Below, one piece after another: positions 12,036 to 50,691 of a stretch of DNA of 64,000 nt (positions are counted from its first letter, which is position 1; each line of letters begins with the position of its first letter). The notes below the pieces were generated by a model. It did no database searches, had not been told where the DNA came from, and saw nothing but the letters and a program-made list of their open reading frames with translations. Source of the DNA: Paraphysomonas bandaiensis. Taxonomy: Eukaryota; Protista; Chrysophyceae. The stretch covers positions 62,001-126,000 of the forward strand of contig CBFFRP010000110.1 in NCBI GenBank assembly GCA_965644295.1. Direction: 5' to 3'. The position numbers and the translations under genes were made by a program.

Positions 12036-15000
12036 AAATAAGATTTAAGGTTAGTCTTAATATTTAGTAAGAATATACTTGATATTATTAGAGATAAAGA
12101 TTGAACGATAAGGCCTAATAGTATAATAGCAAGACACGTTTGAGCAGAGCGTTAGCACCACACACATGTGCGTATCTTGTACAGTCGCGTATCATGTATA
12201 GTTTGGTAATTATTCAGTCTATTTGGTATTTCATTGTATATGTGTGTTGTATTCACGCGTTAAGAGATATACGTGAATCAATGACTCCTAATACTCCCCC
12301 TCAATGAAATAATCATATGGCGTATACATAGATATATGGATATAGGTGTATATATTTGGAGATAGTTCTACTGAGGGTAAAACCCACGAGTGCAATCACA
12401 GATTGTGGATTACACTGATGTCAACATACAGCATACTCGTGGGAAACTCCGTAGATCTCTAAGTCATCCATCGTGGTCTCTTGGTTGAGTTCTCTGCCGG
12501 TGGGATAGATACTTTTGTTCTTTTATTGCTAGCAGGTATGTTGATACCTCCCCCCCATTAGTGAATCCCGCAATCTGTGGAACGTGTTTGATGTGAGGGG
12601 TTTAGTTAGAATGTCGGCCAGCATCTCGTTTGTAGGCATGTAATCAACAATAATAGAGTGCGATGCGACTTGTTCTCTTATGAAGTGATATCTGATGGCA
12701 ATATGTTTTGTTCGTCGGTGGTGTACGGGGTTTAGGCATAGTTGAATTGCACCTTTGTTGTCACACCATATGGTTGTTGAGTATGGCATGTGGAAGCCCA
12801 ATTCCGAGAGTAGTGACCGTAGCCAAATAGCTTCTTGACATGCTGTTGATAGTGCCATGTACTCCGCTTCTGTAGAGGATAGAGCTACAGTGGTCTGGAG
12901 TCGTGATTGCCAGGAAATGAGACAATTTCCAATAAAGAAGCAAAACGCTGTGGTCGACCTGCGAGTTAAGTTACAGCGTGCCCAATCACTGTCAGCGAAT
13001 CCAGTTAAAGTAACAGACTTCCCGGAGTACTGTAGACCTTGATCGATAGTGCCTTTGAGGTACCTAAGTATGTTTAATGCGGCTTTGCATGTAGTTAGAT
13101 TTGGATTAGTACTGAAACGAGCAAGGGTGTTTACAGCATATGCAATATCAGGTCTAGTGCACACAGCAATATACATAAGTGAACCTATGAGCTCCTTGTA
13201 AGGAAAATTTTGGACAAATTCTTGATTTTCTTGAGATAGTTGTTTCTTTTCGAGAATGTCTATATGAAAATTTGTTGTCATGGGGTGACTACGTGGCTTG
13301 CAATCTTCCATGTTGAATCTGTGGAGTAGGTTCCGTATGTATTGAGATTGATTTAGTGTCGTAGTTCGATTCTGTATATCCTGTTTGACGAATATGCCGA
13401 GGTAGTAATCTAGGAGGCCGAGATCATGAATGTCGAATTTTTCAGCTAACGAATTCTTGATTTGGATGATGTCAGTCCTACTTTTACCGGCGATAATGAT
13501 GTCATCGACGTAAACTGCCAGAATTATGGGTCGACCATTGATTGATTTCGTGAATATGCACGGGTCGGACACTAATCTGGTAAAACCACAGTCTAACAAA
13601 TAATTAGTACAACATTTATACCAATTTAACCCGGACTGTTTGAGTCCGTATATACTCTTTAGAAGTCTGAGGACTTTACCGTTTGGAACATTGAGACCAG
13701 CGGGTGGATACATGTAAATTTCCTCTTGGAGGTCTGCATTGATGTAAGCAGTGGAGAAATCTACCTGGTGAAGCTCCAACCCAAGTATAGTTGCTAGTGC
13801 TATGACTGTTCTCATTGATGTGGCCTTTGCGACTGGGCTGTAGGTTTCGTTGTAGTCTTTACCCTCGACCTGGGAGAAACCTTGAGCCACTAACCTCGCC
13901 TTGAAGGTAACCTCATCTCGCTTGACCTTTACCCTAAACACGAATTTTCCCCTTATAATGTTGGAATTTGCTGGTGGTGTCGTTATCCTCCAACAGCCTT
14001 TGCTCTCTAGAGACTTGATTTCTTTGTTGATGGCTTTCAGCCATTGTTCCTTGTACCTGCCTGATAGTGCCTCGCCAACATTGTTAGGTGTGTTAGGTAC
14101 ATCATTGCTACATGTGTCATTTGCATGCATAATGATGTCAACATCATTCATGTATAATGTTCTGTAACTATCATGTTTATCAGGTGTTTTGTGGTTGTAC
14201 AAATATCTTTTATCAACATCACAGTGGTATATATTATCACCGAATTTGTGTACATTCATGATTACCCTTTTCCTGGTCTGCCTCTTGCTGTGGAGACTTT
14301 TCTTTACGCAACGGCTCACCTTGTGTCGGTGGGGTGTCCTTACACCCGTAATTGTGCCATCCGGGCTTTGCCGGCTCCTGTCACCCTGGGAATTCACAGT
14401 CTTGATAGCTCGTTTGACCTTACGAGCAGGGTGATCACGCTTGTTGTCACCCCGTGCCTCCTTCGGCACTGTATTCCGCTGAGCTTCTGCTGTGCGGCGA
14501 GGCCTTGCCTCCTTTTCATTTGAGTAGGGTCCTCTCAAATGGCTGTGACTCCCGCCCCGTGTGGCGTCATGACGGCTGTCGGTTGAACTGCTCCTCCCTG
14601 GAGCTGTTCCTTCCACGGGGCATCCTGGTTCCTCTTGCGGGGGTGATACCGCGTTCTGATAACTGAAGTGCTCGGCGGTGTATCTTTCGATGTCCGCAGC
14701 GTGTATTGGGTCATTTAACTCGATGACTCGCCCTTCATTTTCTCGTGGGGCCAATCCTCTGTAAGCAGCCACGTGGCCTTTGATGACTGTGATTCTTGTC
14801 GTGATGTATTGGAGGCCATCCTGTGGATCTGTGTGGGTCATTCCAACGAGGTATTGGAAGCTCTCGGTTGTTCGATTCTCTGAATTTTCTTCTCTCAGTG
14901 ATGATTCGATTTCAGCGTAGTAGTTTTCCTTGACGTCGGGGATGCACTCATTGAAAAAGACGTGACTTGAGATTACGAAGTCCTTGAGTGAAGGTACATA

Positions 15001-17663
15001 TATGACGTACCCTGGTCCATCTTCTCGGTATCCCATGAAGTACCCAATATGGCTATGTGGAGACCAATCGTTTCTTCTCTGAGACTTGTCTATGAATGTA
15101 TGGCATTTGCAGCCCCAAATCCTGGCGTAAGATAAATCGGGGGCCTCGTCGTGGATGAACTGATACGGTGATATGAATCCCTTTGCAGTGGCGCATGGCA
15201 GGCGATTTTTCATATGCGTGACGGTGGACATAGCCTGTTCCCAGAAGTTGGGTGGTAGGCCCGAGTTGCAAATGGATGCAAGCGTTCTTTCCTTGGTCGT
15301 GCGCCATGGTCGTTCTTGTATGGGGTTGTCTTCTGGCGTGTACGGAGCGTTGAAGGTCCAGGTTGATCCTAATTTTCTCAGCAAGTTCAGTACACGATGT
15401 GATACTAGCTCACGGCCACCATCAGCATGATAGTGTATTAGCCGTTTGCCTTTCGAATGCAGATAATCCACAATTTTCTGAATGCACTCAATGACAAAAT
15501 CCTCGGTTCTGTGTTTTCCATAGAATGTCCAACTGTATCTTGAAGCTGCATCGGTAGCTCCAAAGACTACGGTGTTTCCTGTGACTATTGCTGGAGGTGA
15601 AAATGGTCCAGTAAAATCAACTGCTATAAGTCCTCCAAGCTCCTGCGATCTTCTGGTTTTTGTCGGTATCATTTGCCTTGTCTCGCGCCTATGTTTCCTC
15701 CTGTGAGCCTTGCCTTGTGCGCAGCCATCACAAAGGCCTTCTGGTAGCTGTGGCGAGCTCAGGTCGGATTTTGAAATAGTGATTCCTTTCACAAGATTCA
15801 ACTTTAGTGCTTTTTGAATTAAGCCAATGGATGCGTGGGTCAACCTTCGATGTGCCAGGGAGATCGAGGAACCGCTTGATGTAGATGCCAAGTTGCACTG
15901 GTCTTGGATGTAACCTAAATCGGATAATTTGATCTCGTATAGACCGTTTTGTTTCCTGGCTGTGGTTAACAAAATTCCATCGTGGTATACGCGTGCCTCG
16001 TTTGGTCCGAATATAATATTGCAGTTGGCGTCTGTTGTCAACTGGCTGATAGAAATTAAAGTCTTTGACGCGTCTGGAACTAGCCTGCACTTGCTAATCA
16101 GTCCAAGCTTGCCGTATCCCAATGCCTGCATTTCTGATCCTGATTTGGCGGTGTAAATTGTGGTTTGATCGTAAGTGAATTCGGAGAGTAAGCTTCGTGC
16201 TGCTGTAATTGATATTGTGCAGCCAGAGTCTAGAATGCCAAATTCCTGCTTCTCGTGTTCCGTATGTAGGACGTGGTTGTCTGTGATCATCCCAGAGAAT
16301 GCACTGTAGTCATTGTCATCGTTTGGCCCCTCATCGTCATAGTCTTCCAGTCTTAAGTTCGAATCCCGATGACTGTTTCTTGGGTATTTTGATGATGTGT
16401 TCTTGGAGTGATGCCCTTTCCCTCTTTTGTCGTCGTTTCGTTTGTTTGTGGACTTCTGCATCTGTTGTATGTGTTCCCACGAGTGCTTGCACTCTGCTGC
16501 AATGTGGTTGGATCCATTGCATCTGAAGCACTTAACTTCGCGCGAGGCTCTTGTGACTTTGCTGGGCTTGTTGAATTTCTTCTGTTTTCGCTGCCCGTTG
16601 TTGTGCTTCTGCTTCTTCGGTAGACGGGGGTTAAACGGCTGTTTGCCTGTTGAGCTGTAGTTTGCGCTGTCCCGTTTGGTTTCCGTATTTTGTGATAGTA
16701 GGGAGCCTACAGTGGAATGCTCGAATGCTCTCAATCTTCTTATCAGCGTTTTATAATCATCAATTGGGTTCATTTGGAGGTTGATTGCCAGGTCCTTATA
16801 GGTCTGGTTCTCATTTGAGACCATCCCTTGTCGTATTCTTGAAATAAGGTCTTGTTCAGAGACTTTGTGGCCATGTGTAGCGAGCTTTAATCGCAATTTT
16901 TCGACTTCGTCCAGGAATTGATTGATTGTTTGAGCTTGCTTGATTTTGATTGATTGCAGTTGGCCAATGAGGTCGGTTATCGTATCATTTGAGGTCTTGT
17001 CTTTGAAATGCTTTTCGATCTCTGACCATGCCCTTTTTCCATCTCCTTCAGGGACTGTTTCGATAATACCCTCTGCTTCCTCGTTTTGGCCAATCACCGC
17101 GCTGGATAGAAGTGACCATAGGTAATTGTTGCCCTCCTCGAAATACTGCATATTTTCGTCGTAGGCGTTTTTCCTGTATAGGTAGTCCTCTTCTGTTTCT
17201 TCCTCTTGACGTATAGGCTCCTCTGGCGCATCGTTTCTTAGGATGTATACTATCTTAGGCTTACGAAAGAACCAGGCTCTACTTTTCTTCTGCCATTTTG
17301 AGAAGTTCTTGGCGTCGAAGGGTGGCATGGAATCCTTCCTCTTGTCCGATGAGTCGGAGTCGGAGTTATCGTAACTGTTAGTCTTAGAACTACCATCCGC
17401 TACCAAAATAAGATTTAAGGTTAGTCTTAATATTTAGTAAGAATATACTTGATATTATTAGAGATAAAGATTGAACGATAAGGCCTAATAGTATAATAGC
17501 AAGACACGTTTGAGCAGAGCGTTAGCACCACACACATGTGCGTATCTTGTACAGTCGCGTATCATGTATAGTTTGGTAATTATTCAGTCTATTTGGTATT
17601 TCATTGTATATGTGTGTTGTATTCACGCGTTAAGAGATATACGTGAATCAATGACTCCTAATA
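12036..17663 (-). mobile_element. Intact full-length Ty1/copia LTR retrotransposon (5628 bp)
   Basis: 258-bp LTRs at 12036-12293 and 17406-17663, identical by eye. 5-bp TSD ggatt (12031-12035, 17664-17668). PBS TGGTAGCGG (initiator-Met-like) abuts the 5' LTR and PPT TTGAGGGGGAG abuts the 3' LTR. Confidence 0.97.
12529..17328 (-). CDS. Copia Gag-Pol polyprotein (1599 aa from the first ATG)
   Basis: Single uninterrupted ORF in copia order: CCHC knuckle CFRCNGSNHIAAEC, protease LDSGC, integrase HHCC + D/D/E (VDFTG, HADGG, IQER), RT YVDD, RNase H DSDWA/EAEY/CDN/ADILTK. Confidence 0.97.
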   Translation of the reverse strand: MPPFDAKNFSKWQKKSRAWFFRKPKIVYILRNDAPEEPIRQEEETEEDYLYRKNAYDENMQYFEEGNNYLWSLLSSAVIGQNEEAEGIIETVPEGDGKRAWSEIEKHFKDKTSNDTITDLIGQLQSIKIKQAQTINQFLDEVEKLRLKLATHGHKVSEQDLISRIRQGMVSNENQTYKDLAINLQMNPIDDYKTLIRRLRAFEHSTVGSLLSQNTETKRDSANYSSTGKQPFNPRLPKKQKHNNGQRKQKKFNKPSKVTRASREVKCFRCNGSNHIAAECKHSWEHIQQMQKSTNKRNDDKRGKGHHSKNTSSKYPRNSHRDSNLRLEDYDDEGPNDDNDYSAFSGMITDNHVLHTEHEKQEFGILDSGCTISITAARSLLSEFTYDQTTIYTAKSGSEMQALGYGKLGLISKCRLVPDASKTLISISQLTTDANCNIIFGPNEARVYHDGILLTTARKQNGLYEIKLSDLGYIQDQCNLASTSSGSSISLAHRRLTHASIGLIQKALKLNLVKGITISKSDLSSPQLPEGLCDGCAQGKAHRRKHRRETRQMIPTKTRRSQELGGLIAVDFTGPFSPPAIVTGNTVVFGATDAASRYSWTFYGKHRTEDFVIECIQKIVDYLHSKGKRLIHYHADGGRELVSHRVLNLLRKLGSTWTFNAPYTPEDNPIQERPWRTTKERTLASICNSGLPPNFWEQAMSTVTHMKNRLPCATAKGFISPYQFIHDEAPDLSYARIWGCKCHTFIDKSQRRNDWSPHSHIGYFMGYREDGPGYVIYVPSLKDFVISSHVFFNECIPDVKENYYAEIESSLREENSENRTTESFQYLVGMTHTDPQDGLQYITTRITVIKGHVAAYRGLAPRENEGRVIELNDPIHAADIERYTAEHFSYQNAVSPPQEEPGCPVEGTAPGRSSSTDSRHDATRGGSHSHLRGPYSNEKEARPRRTAEAQRNTVPKEARGDNKRDHPARKVKRAIKTVNSQGDRSRQSPDGTITGVRTPHRHKVSRCVKKSLHSKRQTRKRVIMNVHKFGDNIYHCDVDKRYLYNHKTPDKHDSYRTLYMNDVDIIMHANDTCSNDVPNTPNNVGEALSGRYKEQWLKAINKEIKSLESKGCWRITTPPANSNIIRGKFVFRVKVKRDEVTFKARLVAQGFSQVEGKDYNETYSPVAKATSMRTVIALATILGLELHQVDFSTAYINADLQEEIYMYPPAGLNVPNGKVLRLLKSIYGLKQSGLNWYKCCTNYLLDCGFTRLVSDPCIFTKSINGRPIILAVYVDDIIIAGKSRTDIIQIKNSLAEKFDIHDLGLLDYYLGIFVKQDIQNRTTTLNQSQYIRNLLHRFNMEDCKPRSHPMTTNFHIDILEKKQLSQENQEFVQNFPYKELIGSLMYIAVCTRPDIAYAVNTLARFSTNPNLTTCKAALNILRYLKGTIDQGLQYSGKSVTLTGFADSDWARCNLTRRSTTAFCFFIGNCLISWQSRLQTTVALSSTEAEYMALSTACQEAIWLRSLLSELGFHMPYSTTIWCDNKGAIQLCLNPVHHRRTKHIAIRYHFIREQVASHSIIVDYMPTNEMLADILTKPLTSNTFHRLRDSLMGGRYQHTC

Positions 17664-36042: not shown

Positions 36043-39000
36043 TGTTGGAATACGTATGGTTCTCTAAGATAGTACTGTAGAATACGTTAAATACAATGTG
36101 AAAAACAGTAATACGTAGTCAATAGTCAAAGGTGCTATATAGCTATAACTGTGAAACTGAAGTATTATATCATGACGATTCAAGAAGATACGGAAGTTGA
36201 GCAGTGGTTGACATGAACGAAATAATTTATCATGTTGTTGACATGTGTTACATGACAACACACACAATTGTGTATACAATTATAATAAAATAATCTATCT
36301 AGTTTGACTAACCTAAACTTCTCTTACAACGATCTTAATCATCTGAAAATGGTCATTTGTCAATATGGTAGCGAATGCGGAGGAGAGAAGGAGGATAGAG
36401 CTGATGTTCCATGGTTCGACGAGAGCAGCGTTGAACAATGGATCGAAGACTTTGAGACGATCCTTATGAGAAAGGAGCAGAGTGAGGTGGCTCTAGAAAG
36501 GCAACCAGAGGAAGAGGATTTCATAATTCAACCCCTGAATAGTCTTGAGACTAAGTCCTACAAAGAAGCGGTGGACAAGTATTGGAAAGCAAATGCAATT
36601 GCCTACTCATACTGCAGAGAGGCGGTGAAGCGATCTCCGAAGGCGCTGCAGAAGTTTCATCTGAAGCACAAGAAGTTCAAGAGATGGTTAGCACTCTTAA
36701 ATCGTGTTTTGAAGGAGGAACACAAAACAAGATTAGTGCTCTTCTTGCTCAGTTTGGATCATTCGAGATGAAGCCAGGGGAGACCGCGAGAGAGTATGTA
36801 CTGCGTTTTGAGCTGCTTCTTCGTGAAGTTCAGACGCATAACCAAACGGTAACGGAAGAATCATAAATTAGTAGGCTGAAGGAGGGAATTATCAGTGATG
36901 AATATGACGGTTTGAATTATGCCCGATGATGTACCATATGAATTGCTATCCAAACGTATCGAACAGATCGACGACACCAAGTATGGGAGGAAAATCATAG
37001 AGAAGAAGCGCAAGAACACGGAGGAGCTGAATCATATTGAAAAGCCTCGAAAGAAAGAGAGAGTATCTACAAAGAGGAAGTGCACTTATTGCTCGAAGAA
37101 AGGTATAATACACAATCATAATACTGAACAATGTAGGAAGAAAAAGGGGGAAACAAAGGGACAAAGACCGGGCAGTAAGGAATATACAGGATGCAGAGTA
37201 TGCAAATCCAAAAACCATCGCGCGAACGAATGTCCCCGAAATTCGACAGGAAAGACCAAGAAACCCCAGAAATCTGACAAGGTTTTCACCTTCGAGAATA
37301 TCCGCAGAGGAGGAACCGAGTCTGACTCGGAGTCCGAAGCGAATATGCATTATGACTGCGCTGTTGATATATATGATAAAAGTGACACATGTATGATTGG
37401 TACTGCTGAACACTTTACATACATAGATACATGCTGTTCATCGTCTATGTTTTTGATAAATGATCAGCAAGTATTCGATGAATCAACTCCATCAGATAGA
37501 GTTATCAGAGGCTCCAAGAAACGGCAACAGGAAGGGTAAACGACTGGAAGGGTATTGAATTCTCCGAAGACATCAACAGATTTCTGTGTTCGGGGAAACG
37601 CTTGAACGATATGGGTTATGAGTTCATCGTTTGGAATGGAATTCGAATCGTGGATCACAACACTGGAGTGATAGTATGCTAAATGGTATGACTGCGGTCC
37701 CTACGCAAACCTTACTGAGTCTGCCAAATGTATCCAGCTGTAGTAGGGGTGCACCAGAAGCAAATTTGACTGATCAGTATGGAGAATGGGCCATTTCAAC
37801 AAAGGGGCTCTAACGGAGGCACATAGAAGGATGTTGTTCACTGGCTCAAATCTGCAGAGGAAGCACCTATCGAAGACTGCATTAATAAAATCTTGTCTCT
37901 GTAGCATATGTGCCAGATCAAAGATTACGAGAGTTTCGTTTCACACAAAGGAGGATACGGATGTCAAGCCGGACATATCGGCTGATGTGCAAGTATTTCT
38001 GAATACTCCCGCTCAAGGTGATGAGCGCTACGTGATCACCCGAGCAGGATGTTCTGGGTAAACTAAAAGTGATTCAGTTTTTTAGAGAGGTGTTCAAAGG
38101 AGAGATTAGGCAATATAAGCTGAGAGTGGACCACTACCACGCTACGCTGATGGAGCTGGAGAACTCACAAACTTAGGAGCTATTTGAGATCACAAGGCTG
38201 CTACAAACATACTTGGTCTTCAACAGAGTGTCCGGAAATGAATGCAGATTCAGGACTGCATCAGAGATGGCGTTGGCGATGTTGTTGCAGTCAGGCCTAC
38301 CGGTTCCATTCTGGTTAGACGCGTATCATGCTGCTCGCTATACACTGATCAGACTCCCTACAAGGACGGACAGAGGATACATGTCCCCATATGAGTATGT
38401 CACGGGTCAGCCACCCAGTTTGAAATATTTTAGAGTATGGGGGTGCAAAACTTATATATTGACACCTAAGGCGGACAGGCGAAAGGACTGGGACGATAAA
38501 TCAAAGATTTGATACCTAGTGGGATATTCGGAAGATAAAGTTGGATACCAGGTGTATCTCCCAGCAACCGATAAGGTAATTACGTGTGTACACATACTCA
38601 CAGATGAGAGTATACCTTCCCGCACCGAAGAATATTACGCAGAAATCGACGCTCTCCGAGTACGAACAGCACCTAGACCAAAGACGGTGAATGATTATCA
38701 GCATCTCGTGAAGACTTTTCACATAGACGATGAAGACGAGCTGTTGTACAAGACCACCAGAGTGGTAGAAAGAAAGGGTGTCATTGTTGGTTATCGGTCA
38801 CTTGTAACTGCGGGGAGAACCCACATTGAGCAGAAGGTACCCATACATATAGAAGATGTTCAGGTAATGACAAGGAATACGCCTGGATACACGGGATATA
38901 CGGGAACGAGGGACGCCTCTAGTACCACTGATGGACGGAGTACGTCCACTATCTCAGCGCCTGAGAGCCATCAGGAGCAGCTAGTTAACCATGGTATTAT

Positions 39001-41359
39001 TCAGGGAGCACCTGATGAAGATATGACTCAAGGAGTACTTGATGAAGATGCAGCTCAAGGAGTACCTGAATATACTGATACTATAAATTCTAACAGTACT
39101 AATACCCTACAGAGAGTATCTAAAAGGGATGCAGAGAAACGTAAGCGTTTACGGAGGAGGCTAGCTAATGCTTCAGTGTTAGGAGTTTAACATGATAGAG
39201 GTAATGGATGCCGATGTAAATGTCATGGATTCAGAGGAGAGTACTGAGAATAAACACGTCCATGAACCGAACAGTTTTCTAGAGGCGGAGAGGTCCTCTC
39301 AAGCGGACGAATGGAGAACAGCCAGACGAATAGAGAAGAAAGCTCTTTTACGAAGAGGCGTTTTGAAGATAGTACGTCGACCATCTGGGGTCAAATTAAT
39401 CAGATGTAAGTATGTTCAAAAACTCAAGCGTGACATACTAGGCAACATACAGAAGTATAAAGCTCGACTAGTCGCACTAGGAAATCTTCAGGAGAAAACT
39501 GAGGAGGAGCCATCTACATTTGCACCGGTCGTAAAAGGGATAACTATCAGGCTCGTGATTGCAATTGCTTTTATGTTCCATATGCATGTACACCAGCTTG
39601 ATGTCAGTTCTTCATCTTGTTATGCAAATTTAGATGAAGATGTCTACATGTACCCACCTCCAGATGAGGAGCTCAGCAATGGATGGTGCTTTAAACTCAT
39701 CAAAGCACTATATGGTTTACGAGCCTCACCGCGTCAGTGGAATCGCCACATCGATAAATTCATAAAGTCAATGCAGTTTAGATCATGCGTGTTAGATACC
39801 TGCTTATATTATCGTTGGCACCAAGGCAAACTTACGTTATTACTCCTGTATGTAGATGACATCATTATCGCATCTGTGGATTTTGAATTCCTTGTTTTTG
39901 TCAAGAACAAGTTCTGCCAAACGTTTGAAATGAGGGAAAGTGCCAAAGTTTCCTAAATATTCGAATCACGAGAGGCGAAGACTGGTTCAAACTAGATCAA
40001 TCAAAGTATGCGGAGAAAATAATTCAGAAATTCAACCATGTCATGGGGAACAGTAGAAAGAATAAGGAAGCTCCGTTGCCATCAAATGTACAAGAACTAC
40101 TAGCTGCAGAACGGGAACTTACATCAGAACAGGAGGACTGGGTCTCACAATTTCCGTATCGTAGTATTATTGGAGCAATCCTGTATCTCGCACTCCACAC
40201 AAGACCAGATCTCGCCTATGCAATCGGACTACTATCGAGATACAGCAGTAATCCTACATACGCATCGTGTCGTTTAGCTATTCATTTACTGAAATATTTG
40301 AGAGGCACCACCAGCAAAGGAATCAAATTCAGTGGGAGTAAGTTTGATTTACATGTATTTAGTGATGCGGACTGGGCAGGTGATATACTAACGAGACGTT
40401 CAACTACCGGTTATATTGTATTCTTATGTGCTGGAGCAATCGCTTGGCAGTCCAAACTGCAGACTACAGTTGCAACTTTCAGTATGGAGTCCGAGTATAT
40501 GGCTGAATATACGGCCATGCAAGAACTGGTGTGGCTACGGGGGGTGTTACGAGAGCTAGGACTCGCATTGACGAAGCCAACCCCATTCTTCATGGACAGC
40601 AAGAGTGCAAAAGATCTGTCAGAAAATCCAGTCTATCACAAAAGATCAAAACATATTCAGATAAAGTACCACTGGGTTCGGGAACACGTAAATGGAAGGT
40701 TTCCTACAGCCAGATTGATTCATGTATCGACTAAGGATATGGCGGCCGAAATATTTACAAAAGCGTTATCTACAAAGCTCTTTAAACTCCATGAAGAAAC
40801 TATCACAGGGGAAAAGAGAAGCATTTCAAATGAAGTTGAGAAGAATCAGAAGAAGCGGTTCAAGAGAGGTTAAGGGTGTGTTTTTAGTGGGTAAGAATCC
40901 CACATAACTGTGTTACAGCGAAGTGTGATGTTCACAGTATCTTTATGAAGATTTTCACATCCGTTTTATCCTAAGATGACTAGATGATATATATAGCTGC
41001 AGTATAATGACGATTACTCGTTTCTACATTGAGGAGGAGTGTTGGAATACGTATGGTTCTCTAAGATAGTACTGTAGAATACGTTAAATACAATGTGAAA
41101 AACAGTAATACGTAGTCAATAGTCAAAGGTGCTATATAGCTATAACTGTGAAACTGAAGTATTATATCATGACGATTCAATATACGGAAGTTGAGCAGTG
41201 GTTGACATGAACGAAATAATTTATCATGTTGTTGACATGTGTTACATGACAACACACACAATTGTGTATACAATTATAATAAAATAATCTATCTAGTTTG
41301 ACTAACTTAAACTTCTCTTACAACGATCTTAATCATCTGAAAATGGTCACTTGTCAATA
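36043..41359 (+). mobile_element. Full-length but coding-defective Ty1/copia LTR retrotransposon
   Basis: LTRs at 36043-36365 and 41040-41359 (about 3 differences), TSD ttctt (36038-36042, 41360-41364), PBS TGGTAGCGAA, PPT TTGAGGAGGAG. Gag (2 CCHC), IN, RT (YVDD) and RNase H are broken into many ORFs. Confidence 0.95.
36349..40873 (+). pseudogene. Disrupted copia gag-pol
   Basis: Fragments in different frames (36304, 36582, 36919, 37786, 38213, 38519, 39192, 40043) separated by stops and frameshifts. Confidence 0.9.
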
Positions 41360-41504
41360 TTCTTAAGTTTTTGAGCTGATTGAAGAATTTTTTCCGCAGA
41401 GCCAACTTCTACTTTTTATAAATGTCCCTACTTTTGTATGCATTCATCGTTCAGTTGTCTCTTCTAATCACTATAGGATATATATATTATATTAAGAGAA
41501 TTAC

Positions 41505-48277: not shown

Positions 48278-49305
48278 CAGGGCTGCGTATCAATTATCAA
48301 TTCAATTAATTGATAAGAAAATACCATCTTTTTTGTATTTTTTGTTGTGAAAAACTAATCTTAACGATAAAAATCGAAGAATGATGAAGGACTATAGCAT
48401 CCATCAGGGCTATATGTAAAAGAAGTGAATGTCTTATCATTAGCAATATAGGCGTGTAAGAGACAGAACTAATGATGTAGCAAAAACGAAAGTGGGGCAG
48501 GCTATGTATCAACTAATTGATTTTTTATTAAACGCAATTAATTGTCAACAATTAATTATTGAAATTACAATAATTGAAATTGGGACATCAAATCATAATT
48601 GCAATTATAATTGACTCCAGCTCTTGCTTCAATTAATTGAATTGAAAAGTAGTTAAAAACGGCAATTTTTATTGCGAAAATCTAATTTTTACGATAAATA
48701 TCGACGATTGACGTAAGACTATATATTATCCATGTTGTATGATTCATCTCACATAATAATTTATTTAATTAATAAGAGATATATACATGAGTGATAAAAA
48801 GTGGTACCAGAAGTGAATGCACGAGAGAAAATAAATGATAATAACGAAGAGGTTGCAAAATATAGAGACTTGTTGGCAGTGCCGGGAGTGTCCTGTAGGA
48901 AAAAAGGTGACCTGAAGTATAAGACGGGTTATGGGTGGAGCACCTGTCGCAGCATGCCATGGTCAAATACGATGGATGGAAAGATAAAGTTTTCTTTATC
49001 TTTCCATCCGTCGATGTGGTGGTGCGATGGATAAATATGTTGAGCACAAAATATTCCCTCACAGTGCGTATCACTGATTGGAGAGGGTGATTATGAATGA
49101 TCTTCCTTTTTCTTTTAAAGAAAACCCATTGACACAAAAGAACATTAGGTTGAGTAATAATATTTTGAGATCAACACTTTTATGTTTTTACGCATGACCG
49201 TCGCCTCTGGAATGAAATGACAGTTGAAGTAGCTATATATATATTGTAGTTTTAGTATACTAAATAATTGCAATTATTGAAATTGAAACAGCAACAAATA
49301 AATAG
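48278..49305 (+). mobile_element. hAT-like non-autonomous element, right end interrupted by the copia fragment
   Basis: Starts cagggctgcgtatcaatt. 49198-49305 matches 59023-59140, whose continuation ends in gaagccctg. Confidence 0.5.
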
Positions 49306-49329
49306 ACGTTCGATAATGATGAAGTCGTC

Positions 49330-50691
49330 ATTCGAAATAAGACTACGAACAAGACACTCATTTAATAGACAGAGAAGTGTTAATGGATTATATCCAGTTC
49401 GACTCGAAGACTTACTTCAGCTTGGAGAAGAATCCTCAGCAGCACTTGAGGAGCAGGGATTTGATGACCAGCGAATTTTATGGCACAAAAGACTTGGCCA
49501 TGTGAACTATGATAAACTGACTGAGTCCGACCGCCGAGGCCTAGTTGATGGAATAAATCTGGACAAGAAATATTTCAGAAAAAGCACAAAAAAACGATAT
49601 GCAAATGTAATACCTGCATGCGATCGAAATTCACTAGAAAGAACTTCAGGACTCCACGCCAGTTGATGAACTTAGACAACAACCCAAATGAGAGAGGGGT
49701 GCTCTTCAGTGCAGATACGATGGAAGTCCTAAACACGCCATCGATGGAAGGCTACAAACATGTGTTACTATTCAAGCACAGTGATGCAAAACATGTATGG
49801 GCTTCTTATGATGGCTTGAAAAACAAGACTGGGAGTGAAGTGTTAAAAGTGTATGAAGGACATGGTAGAGACCCAACTTGTCAAAGAAGGATTGCAACTA
49901 CGACGATACCATGCAGATGGCGCAGGAGAATTAGTAGGGCAACATGTCAGGCAGTACTTACGTGAAACCACCAGCACAAGGACTGTACAAGTTACTTGGA
50001 CTCCACGTGACACACCCGAAATGAATTCGCTATCGGAACGCACTAATCGTACAGTGAAGGAGATGGCCTTGCTATCTTGCTCGATAGTGGCATGCCATCA
50101 GTATTTTGGTTCAAAGCTGTCTTGCATGCTGTATATCTGATCAACAGGTTACCTACGAAGACTACGAAAGGATACATCTCACCTGTTGAGTATATTACTG
50201 GAACCGCACCAGATGTGAGTGACTTGAAGATCTGGGGCTGCAAGGCATGGGCTATCGTGCCGAAGGAACTGCGCCGCAAAGAGTGGAAGGAAAAGGGAAA
50301 GCCTGGATACTATATGGGACAATGTCAACAACCTGTTGGACACCAAATATATATTCCAGACCTGGATGCTATTATTGTTGCAGTAAACGCCAACTTTGAT
50401 GAGTCTATTCCAGAGCGTTCACAGGAGTATTTCGACGAAATAGATAATCTACAAATTGACACCTCAGAAACAGCAGAAAGTGTAAATGATTATCAGTACC
50501 TGGTGGGCCTCAGACATCTTGATGGACACCTGTATTATGTTACCACCAGAGTGATAGAGAGAAGAGGAGTCAATGTTGCATATAGGAAACTAGATACGGA
50601 AGGAAATACTACAGAGGAGCAAACTCCAATTCATATACTTGATGAACAAAAACTAGATCAAAGGCAACTAATTATTGGACGTAGTGAGTAA
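49330..50691 (+). pseudogene. Copia integrase-region fragment (third family)
   Basis: LWHKRLGH, RYHADGAGEL, MNSLSERTNRT, LKIWGCKAW; several frameshifts, no LTRs seen. Confidence 0.9.

Follow-up and report, generated by a model that had tools for sequence, protein, structure and literature searches.

The window analyzed here is a stretch of 64,000 nucleotides from the chrysophyte Paraphysomonas bandaiensis (assembly GCA_965644295.1, contig CBFFRP010000110.1, positions 62,001 to 126,000 of the forward strand), and all coordinates below refer to it. It includes two full-length copia long terminal repeat (LTR) retrotransposons and a fragment of a third, each from a different family. Our subject is a short block of amino acids that all three encode just after the C-terminal region of the integrase (IN). 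An original prediction, made from the sequence of this window alone, had noticed the block and taken it for a small targeting module that defines a copia lineage of its own. We call carriers the copia proteins in which the block is found. The elements and their relevant parts are the following, where the E-values for the accessory domain come from a profile of relatives outside the window, and RT and ORF stand for reverse transcriptase and open reading frame.

12036..17663, minus strand: element 1, a complete copia LTR retrotransposon, with LTRs, a target-site duplication and an intact ORF
15334..15630, minus strand: element 1 integrase catalytic core, residues 593-691 (Pfam rve, E = 5.8e-7)
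14944..15147, minus strand: element 1 integrase SH3-like C-terminal domain, residues 754-821 (PF25597 SH3_retrovirus, E = 2.8e-16)
14677..14928, minus strand: element 1 accessory domain, a short linking helix plus the block (E = 8e-27; AlphaFold2 core predicted local distance difference test score, pLDDT, 93-97)
14107..14679, minus strand: element 1 linker, residues 910-1100 (mean pairwise identity 0.11 in ten full-length carriers)
13276..13995, minus strand: element 1 RT, residues 1138-1377 (Pfam RVT_2, E = 5.8e-62)
36043..41360, plus strand: element 2, copia, a second family, with pol split into several ORFs (LTRs 36043-36366 and 41040-41360)
38627..38872, plus strand: element 2 accessory domain, core 38696-38860 (E = 2e-34)
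49268..50691, plus strand: copy 3, a truncated integrase fragment of a third family, with a gag_pre-integrs match and without LTRs or RT
50422..50643, plus strand: copy 3 accessory domain, core 50491-50643 (E = 5e-24)

Translation places the block exactly where it had been proposed, at 14680-14859, 38696-38860 and 50491-50643. The first copy is on the minus strand, a detail that the original prediction left unstated (the plus-strand translation of 14680-14859 does not contain the block peptide), and the blocks of element 2 and copy 3 read on the plus strand. In each of the three, the block is downstream of the integrase C-terminal region. The core in element 1 corresponds to residues 850-909 of the polyprotein, and once the short preceding helix is included, the domain is wider than the core first noted in all three copies, with the limits listed above.

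The three copies have 23 invariant positions in about 83 aligned columns, and the linker that flanks them cannot be aligned. When the profile of outside relatives is compared to the six-frame translation of the window, it finds these three block sites and no others. The LTRs of the two full-length elements are indeed unrelated, as had been claimed, and the elements have no similarity to each other as DNA, with the sole exception of a 45-nt stretch inside the block that is common to element 2 and copy 3. The shared block is a real observation, far beyond chance.

Conservation of the block

We compared the regions of the polyprotein by mean pairwise identity in ten full-length carriers. The block has the highest value of all regions (0.45), followed by RNase H (0.43), RT (0.39), the SH3-like domain (0.37), the rve core (0.31), Gag (0.22) and, at the bottom, the linker downstream of the block (0.11). 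Between two family members, the nonsynonymous divergence (dN) is 0.20 in the block and 0.18 in RT, compared with 0.66 in the linker, while the synonymous divergence (dS) is saturated. The block is under strong purifying constraint. The proposal that the block is a selected, folded module, as opposed to linker, is borne out by identity, by dN, and also by the confident pLDDT of its predicted structure.

An approximate signature of the block starts with [DSE]-[YF]-x-[YHF]-L-[VI]-G. It continues in the middle with [HY]-x-D-[DP]-[ED]-D-G-L-x-[YF]-x-T-T-R-V, a [KR]-G turn and x-I-V-[AG]-[YF]-R, and it ends with a variable loop of 10-16 residues followed by E-[ED]-x-x-P-I-H-[VI]-x-D-[VI]-x-x-M-T. 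Four or five aromatic or His residues are conserved, counted as sequence positions only, and the core is slightly acidic on average, with a net charge of -1.6.

Distribution and position among relatives

A HMMER profile built from the three copies was searched exhaustively against 1.84 billion cluster representatives, and it reports 368 proteins at E <= 1e-3, of which 92 have E <= 1e-10. All the long matches that we examined are copia polyproteins with the order SH3_retrovirus, block, RVT_2. In the 56 longest, the Pfam families that co-occur with the block are those of copia only, and no host-gene architecture was found. The carriers come from marine metagenomes and from MMETSP. A word-index protein search limited to the block recovers just the element itself, and one started from the protein P0002 recovers 11 proteins, two of them named Paraphysomonas.

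The position of the block is nearly invariant. Among the 57 carriers with at least 85 residues upstream, the SH3-like domain abuts the domain profile in 55, and the median distance between the two is 0. The two exceptions are P0036 and P0143. P0036 (426 aa) is an internal-deletion derivative in which a protease fragment runs straight into the block, followed by linker and the first part of RT, and the integrase has been lost. P0143 (L004:214-822) is a 202-aa ORF where the block follows a low-complexity N-terminus rich in K, S and E, without integrase. It could be a free-standing or domesticated copy of the block, and it is on a short contig of 1.2 kb.

P0170 (MBT7307647.1) belongs to a carrier cluster, and its NCBI entry names it a "DDE-type integrase/transposase/recombinase" of a gammaproteobacterial metagenome-assembled genome; it is probably a binning contaminant, because the sequence is that of a eukaryotic copia polyprotein. 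In two metagenome scaffolds (L005:1-10003 and L006:1-8194), copia copies follow one another head to tail every 5.2 kb or so, and these arrays may be assembly artefacts. P0002 and P0302 are identical in DNA over the first 300 codons and saturated at synonymous sites elsewhere, a pattern that either recombination between families or an assembly chimera would produce.

One copia lineage carries the block

Of the 119 copia relatives retrieved by means of the RT-RNase H region, only 4 have the block, and these include both of the closest by RT identity. We then built a maximum-likelihood RT tree of 124 sequences, which is unrooted, leaves out the CoDi reference elements, and samples carriers through the block and non-carriers through RT similarity. 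A single branch with an SH-aLRT support of 99 separates 13 carriers from 110 non-carriers of plant, oomycete, green-algal and metagenomic origin. The side of the carriers also holds one RT-only fragment from the cluster of element 1, too short to show the block, and the carrier group has three deep subclades. The distance from the SH3-like domain to RT has a median of 262 aa in carriers vs. 97 aa in non-carriers. The block is restricted to one copia RT clade, in agreement with the proposal that it marks a distinct lineage.

Predicted fold

AlphaFold2 predicts the block to be ordered, with a core pLDDT above 90. For the block alone, using 114 sequences, the core pLDDT is above 93. For the SH3-like domain plus block of element 1, using an alignment of 36 sequences, the mean pLDDT is 91.4 and the predicted template modelling (TM) score, pTM, is 0.58, with the strands of the SH3-like domain at model positions 20-72 and pLDDT above 90. 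The predicted block begins with a helix and a short strand. An acidic loop leads to a long beta-hairpin, which has the K/R-G turn, and after a variable loop come a short P-I-H strand and a closing helix. In the models the block is thus a folded domain in its own right, some 60-65 residues long, and a short helix connects it to the integrase SH3-like domain. Since pTM is moderate despite the high pLDDT, they also suggest two modules with a loose mutual orientation.

We searched for similar folds using Foldseek. For the single domain there is nothing significant in the PDB; the best E-values are 0.2-1.5, with TM scores of 0.25-0.4. These non-significant matches are KOW, PRC-barrel, the Tudor domains of RapA, UvrD, 53BP1 and UHRF1, SAWADEE, and the MRG15 chromo-barrel. 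MRG15 and MRG2 chromo-barrels appear at E ~1, and canonical chromodomains are absent from the top matches. For the SH3-like domain plus block, the best match is the SETDB1 tandem Tudor (E = 9e-3), a weak one given its TM score of 0.27 and root-mean-square deviation of ~18 A. The next, also weak, are the tandem Tudor readers 53BP1 and SGF29, with TM scores of ~0.3. There is no match in BFVD.

The original prediction of a small beta-rich module therefore stands in part. The modelled block is beta-rich, with two helices in addition, but the assignment to a Tudor, chromo-barrel or SH3-like fold does not follow from Foldseek matches that are non-significant. A description as small, beta-rich and SH3-like suits the flavour of those weak matches and is not demonstrated by them.

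Comparison with known domains

By sequence the domain is an orphan. Pfam scans of the three window copies (E <= 10) give no Chromo match and just scattered chance matches, and scans of 114 members (E <= 1) again give no Chromo match and no consistent family. Searching the PDB sequences with the 3-sequence and the 114-sequence profiles results in nothing at E <= 10.

Two candidates were considered and rejected using hhalign. One is a chromodomain, for which we have a genuine copia example. P0297, a Logan assembly protein of 1426 aa, has a Pfam Chromo match (E = 2e-8) at 841-889, directly after its SH3-like domain at 754-825. It has the copia gene order and a Gag that matches Ty3-type capsid families (PF03732, PF19259), and it is a non-carrier that falls outside the carrier clade in the RT tree. 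Aligned to P0297:826-900, the block has a probability of 1.1%, so that chromodomain identity is rejected at the level of sequence and profile. The other candidate is a duplication of the integrase SH3 domain. The Pfam SH3_retrovirus match ends before the block in element 1 and in the long relatives, and a local duplication is unsupported because the profile-profile probability is 1%.

Precedents

The original prediction had also held that a folded accessory domain is not a standard feature of copia elements. This part is inaccurate, since there are precedents: the putative chromodomain of CoDi-A and CoDi-I, the domain of CopiaMBD, and the Chromo match of P0297. A putative chromodomain was described at the integrase C-terminus of the CoDi-A diatom copia elements (Llorens 2009, PMC2774666), and the report was repeated for CoDi-I (Ustyantsev 2017, PMC5348765). 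The CoDi elements and P0297 resemble the carriers in their copia gene order and in their hosts, which are stramenopile or marine, and they too have a small module between the integrase SH3-like domain and RT. The differences are in the module and in Gag. The CoDi module was alignable to canonical chromodomains, which the carrier block is not, a point that argues, indirectly, for two different modules. P0297 has a Chromo match, unlike the carrier block, which has none to Pfam Chromo or to a PDB chromodomain. As a second indirect point of this kind, CoDi-A elements were scored with 0 CCHC knuckles in Gag (Llorens 2009, PMC2774666), unlike the carriers element 1, P0081, P0104, P0115 and P0065, where Gag has a zf-CCHC.

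CopiaMBD of arthropods has a methyl-CpG-binding domain (MBD) adjacent to the integrase (de Mendoza 2019, PMC6673714), of clear host origin and with demonstrated binding to methyl-CpG (PMC6673714). As in the carriers, a copia lineage is defined by an integrase-adjacent domain that is about as conserved as the enzymatic domains, and a bias of integration has been proposed. For the carrier domain, in contrast to that MBD, no host homologue could be detected in the 56 longest matches.

Outside copia, stramenopile Gypsy elements bear chromo or Tudor domains, for instance Chronos, ECR and Tudor-bearing elements (PMC5348765, PMC12477816), and the capture of reader domains by transposable elements is widespread (10.1101/2021.11.30.470311). 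These Gypsy elements and the chromoviruses of Ty3/gypsy resemble the carriers in having a C-terminal integrase module, acquired repeatedly and independently, and there the reader is thought to steer integration to a chromatin state. Chromoviruses belong to another superfamily and have the integrase last; in contrast, the carrier domain is internal, with a long linker and RT after it, and fits none of the recognised reader families.

Within the Pseudoviridae, the SH3_retrovirus domain (PF25597) adjoins the block in the same protein, and both are small and beta-rich. GKGY is a known motif of the copia integrase C-terminus (PMC3601003); in element 1 a motif of this type is inside the SH3-like domain, upstream of the block. 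In Ty1 and Ty5, like in the carriers, there is an extra segment C-terminal to the copia integrase core, and a targeting role is established for Ty1 and Ty5 only. Their targeting motifs are short and linear, in a disordered C-terminal tail of the integrase. The carrier block, unlike these, is confidently predicted to be a folded domain.

The concept of an accessory domain fused to the integrase is thus already known, with several precedents. The domain itself is a new orphan, and it is the best-conserved part of the elements.

What the domain may do

We are highly confident that the block is a genuine, lineage-defining accessory domain of the integrase. The function we favor, that the domain tethers the intasome to chromatin or to a nuclear ligand, we put forward tentatively, at somewhat less than even chances. 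On the best-supported reading, the slot after the copia integrase SH3-like domain accepts accessory modules, and the carrier clade has fixed an orphan domain there, followed by a predicted disordered basic tail with clusters resembling nuclear localization signals (NLS). After processing by the protease, the domain would remain with the integrase, because the likely cleavage between IN and RT is in the unconserved basic linker of about 190 aa downstream. The domain could then bind chromatin or a nuclear ligand as an accessory tether, and bias where the intasome inserts, in parallel to the chromodomains of chromoviruses, of CoDi-A and of P0297-type copia elements, and to the MBD of CopiaMBD. 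Tethering is proposed because of the analogy with these chromodomain and MBD fusions.

Several results are consistent with tethering: the position next to the SH3-like domain in 55 of 57 carriers, the top conservation, the predicted order, and the slot shared with the Chromo domain of P0297. The published fusions of reader domains to integrases of LTR elements in stramenopiles and other lineages, the weak tandem-Tudor hint, the single RT clade, the longer spacing between the SH3-like domain and RT, and the identical LTRs of element 1 together with MMETSP transcription count in the same direction.

Other results weigh against it. We find no significant match in sequence, profile or fold to any reader or tether domain (Pfam, PDB, hhalign, Foldseek, BFVD). 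As to the context of the insertion sites, the window has no tRNA gene, three copies are too few for insertion-site statistics, and the metagenome loci (L001-L003, which are bare elements, and one further locus of 1 kb) do not have usable flanks. Depending on where the protease cleaves, the domain could end up on a different mature product. And high conservation suits an intrinsic role, enzymatic or in assembly, equally well.

A more specific form of tethering, which we regard as possible and a notch less probable than tethering at large, is that of an unrecognised class of tethering domain unrelated to chromo, Tudor or MBD. Such a class would have a single origin in an old copia clade of marine heterotrophic and other protists, where it would direct integration as a reader or adaptor fold found in transposons only.

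The main alternative is a role intrinsic to the integrase: the domain would be a second C-terminal domain (CTD), small and barrel-like, that serves intasome assembly or binds element or target DNA, instead of targeting a host factor. We consider it unlikely, though a serious contender. Retroviral integrases use their CTDs as architectural DNA-binding units, which provides a precedent. Conservation is higher in the block than anywhere else in the polyprotein, the catalytic core included, the block is consistently fused directly to the SH3-like CTD (55/57), and the model of the two together resembles tandem small barrels, by weak matches. On the other hand, 110 related copia elements work without the block, and P0297 has in the same slot a chromodomain, which is a reader and not an architectural domain. 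In addition, the slightly acidic core (net charge -1.6) does not suggest DNA binding, and a pTM of 0.58 suggests that the block is not rigidly packed on the SH3-like domain.

Two lesser alternatives remain, and the first concerns identity. The block could be the published putative chromodomain of CoDi-A and CoDi-I, a very divergent reader of methylated histone tails, and thus already known. [quoted passage not shown] The succession of hairpin, short strand and C-terminal helix is compatible with a chromo-like three-stranded sheet plus C-terminal helix, and conserved aromatics open the first long strand and close the second. We find this identity improbable, given that none of the 114 members has a Pfam Chromo match at E <= 1, that the profile finds no PDB chromodomain at E <= 10, that hhalign gives 1% against a genuine copia chromodomain, that canonical chromodomains are missing from the top Foldseek matches, and that CoDi-A was scored with 0 CCHC knuckles vs. 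one in the carriers.

The second, to which we give still less weight, is that the domain serves reverse transcription or the maturation of the polyprotein, as an element required in cis for RT activity or as a docking site for the protease. The C-terminus of the Ty1 integrase has been reported as required in cis for RT activity. In its favor are the location of the domain between IN and RT and a conserved acidic loop of the D-[DP]-[ED]-D type. P0036 keeps block and linker, and with them the beginning of RT, after losing IN, which is neutral to mildly supportive. But some 190-230 unconserved residues separate the domain from RT, and the domain is tied to the SH3-like domain and not to RT.

Finally, that the similarity is due to chance, or to a conserved nucleic-acid signal instead of a protein domain, has no supporting points and is refuted by the search for relatives (368, with 92 at E <= 1e-10), by the regional conservation, which is seen in proteins whose DNA cannot be aligned, by dN with a saturated dS, and by the confident fold prediction.

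Integrase-fused accessory domains are the clearest natural cases of programmed choice of an integration site, and they have been reused as targeting tools. To our knowledge, nearly all of the known cases are recognisable readers derived from the host (chromo, Tudor, PHD, MBD). Here, in poorly studied marine protists, an entire copia clade has as its best-conserved part a domain that is confidently predicted to fold, with no family assignment and no host counterpart detected. As a tether, the domain would be a new module of ligand recognition and a handle on the chromatin biology of chrysophytes. Otherwise, it would show that an extra structural domain can be needed by copia integrases. In either case, a family model for the domain would let such elements be annotated correctly, when one member is now labelled a gammaproteobacterial integrase.

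The elements and their surroundings

Element 1 has LTRs of 258 bp (12036-12293 and 17406-17663) that are 100% identical, a 5-bp target-site duplication (AATCC), and a single uninterrupted ORF of 1625 aa at 12529-17406 on the minus strand. Its Pfam domains are Retrotran_gag_2, zf-CCHC, Pol_BBD, gag_pre-integrs, rve, SH3_retrovirus and RVT_2, where the rve score of 30.1 bits is slightly below the curated cut-off of 32.6 bits. By Pfam, element 1 and six long relatives have the copia gene order Gag-PR-IN-RT-RH (PR, protease; RH, RNase H) with an RT of the RVT_2 type. The linker of element 1 is basic and of low complexity, with NLS-like K/R clusters.

P0155 is 100% identical to the polyprotein of element 1 over 1614 aa, and the sequence is also found on metagenome contigs. 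MMETSP transcripts are among the members of the 90% cluster of element 1. The insertion is probably recent, and the element looks both young and expressed, because of its identical LTRs, its intact ORF and the transcripts in its cluster. The C-terminal ends of the two proteins differ: the ORF of element 1 stops six residues past the last aligned position, and P0155 extends for 30 residues more (window 12529-12560).

Element 2 has LTRs that are 98-100% identical. Its reading frame is broken by an in-frame stop at 38510-38512 and by several frame changes, and we searched the broken ORFs piecewise. The pieces are 97-98% identical in amino acids to P0303, an intact 1580-aa transcript labelled Paraphysomonas from MMETSP1103, which by itself points to this chrysophyte or a close relative as the most likely host. 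The frame breaks are either recent decay or indel errors of the assembly. Just past the block, the linker of element 2 has a 27-bp tandem repeat in 2.6 copies (39001-39069), consistent with a linker that evolves freely. The closest relative of copy 3 is P0004, which is only 54% identical.

Among the host genes of the window are those for a myosin, an RRM protein, PRP3 and an amino-acid transporter. Positions 1-2191 hold six copies of a 367-bp unit at 99% identity, with a strong GC skew, and the unit may be a repeated coding exon.

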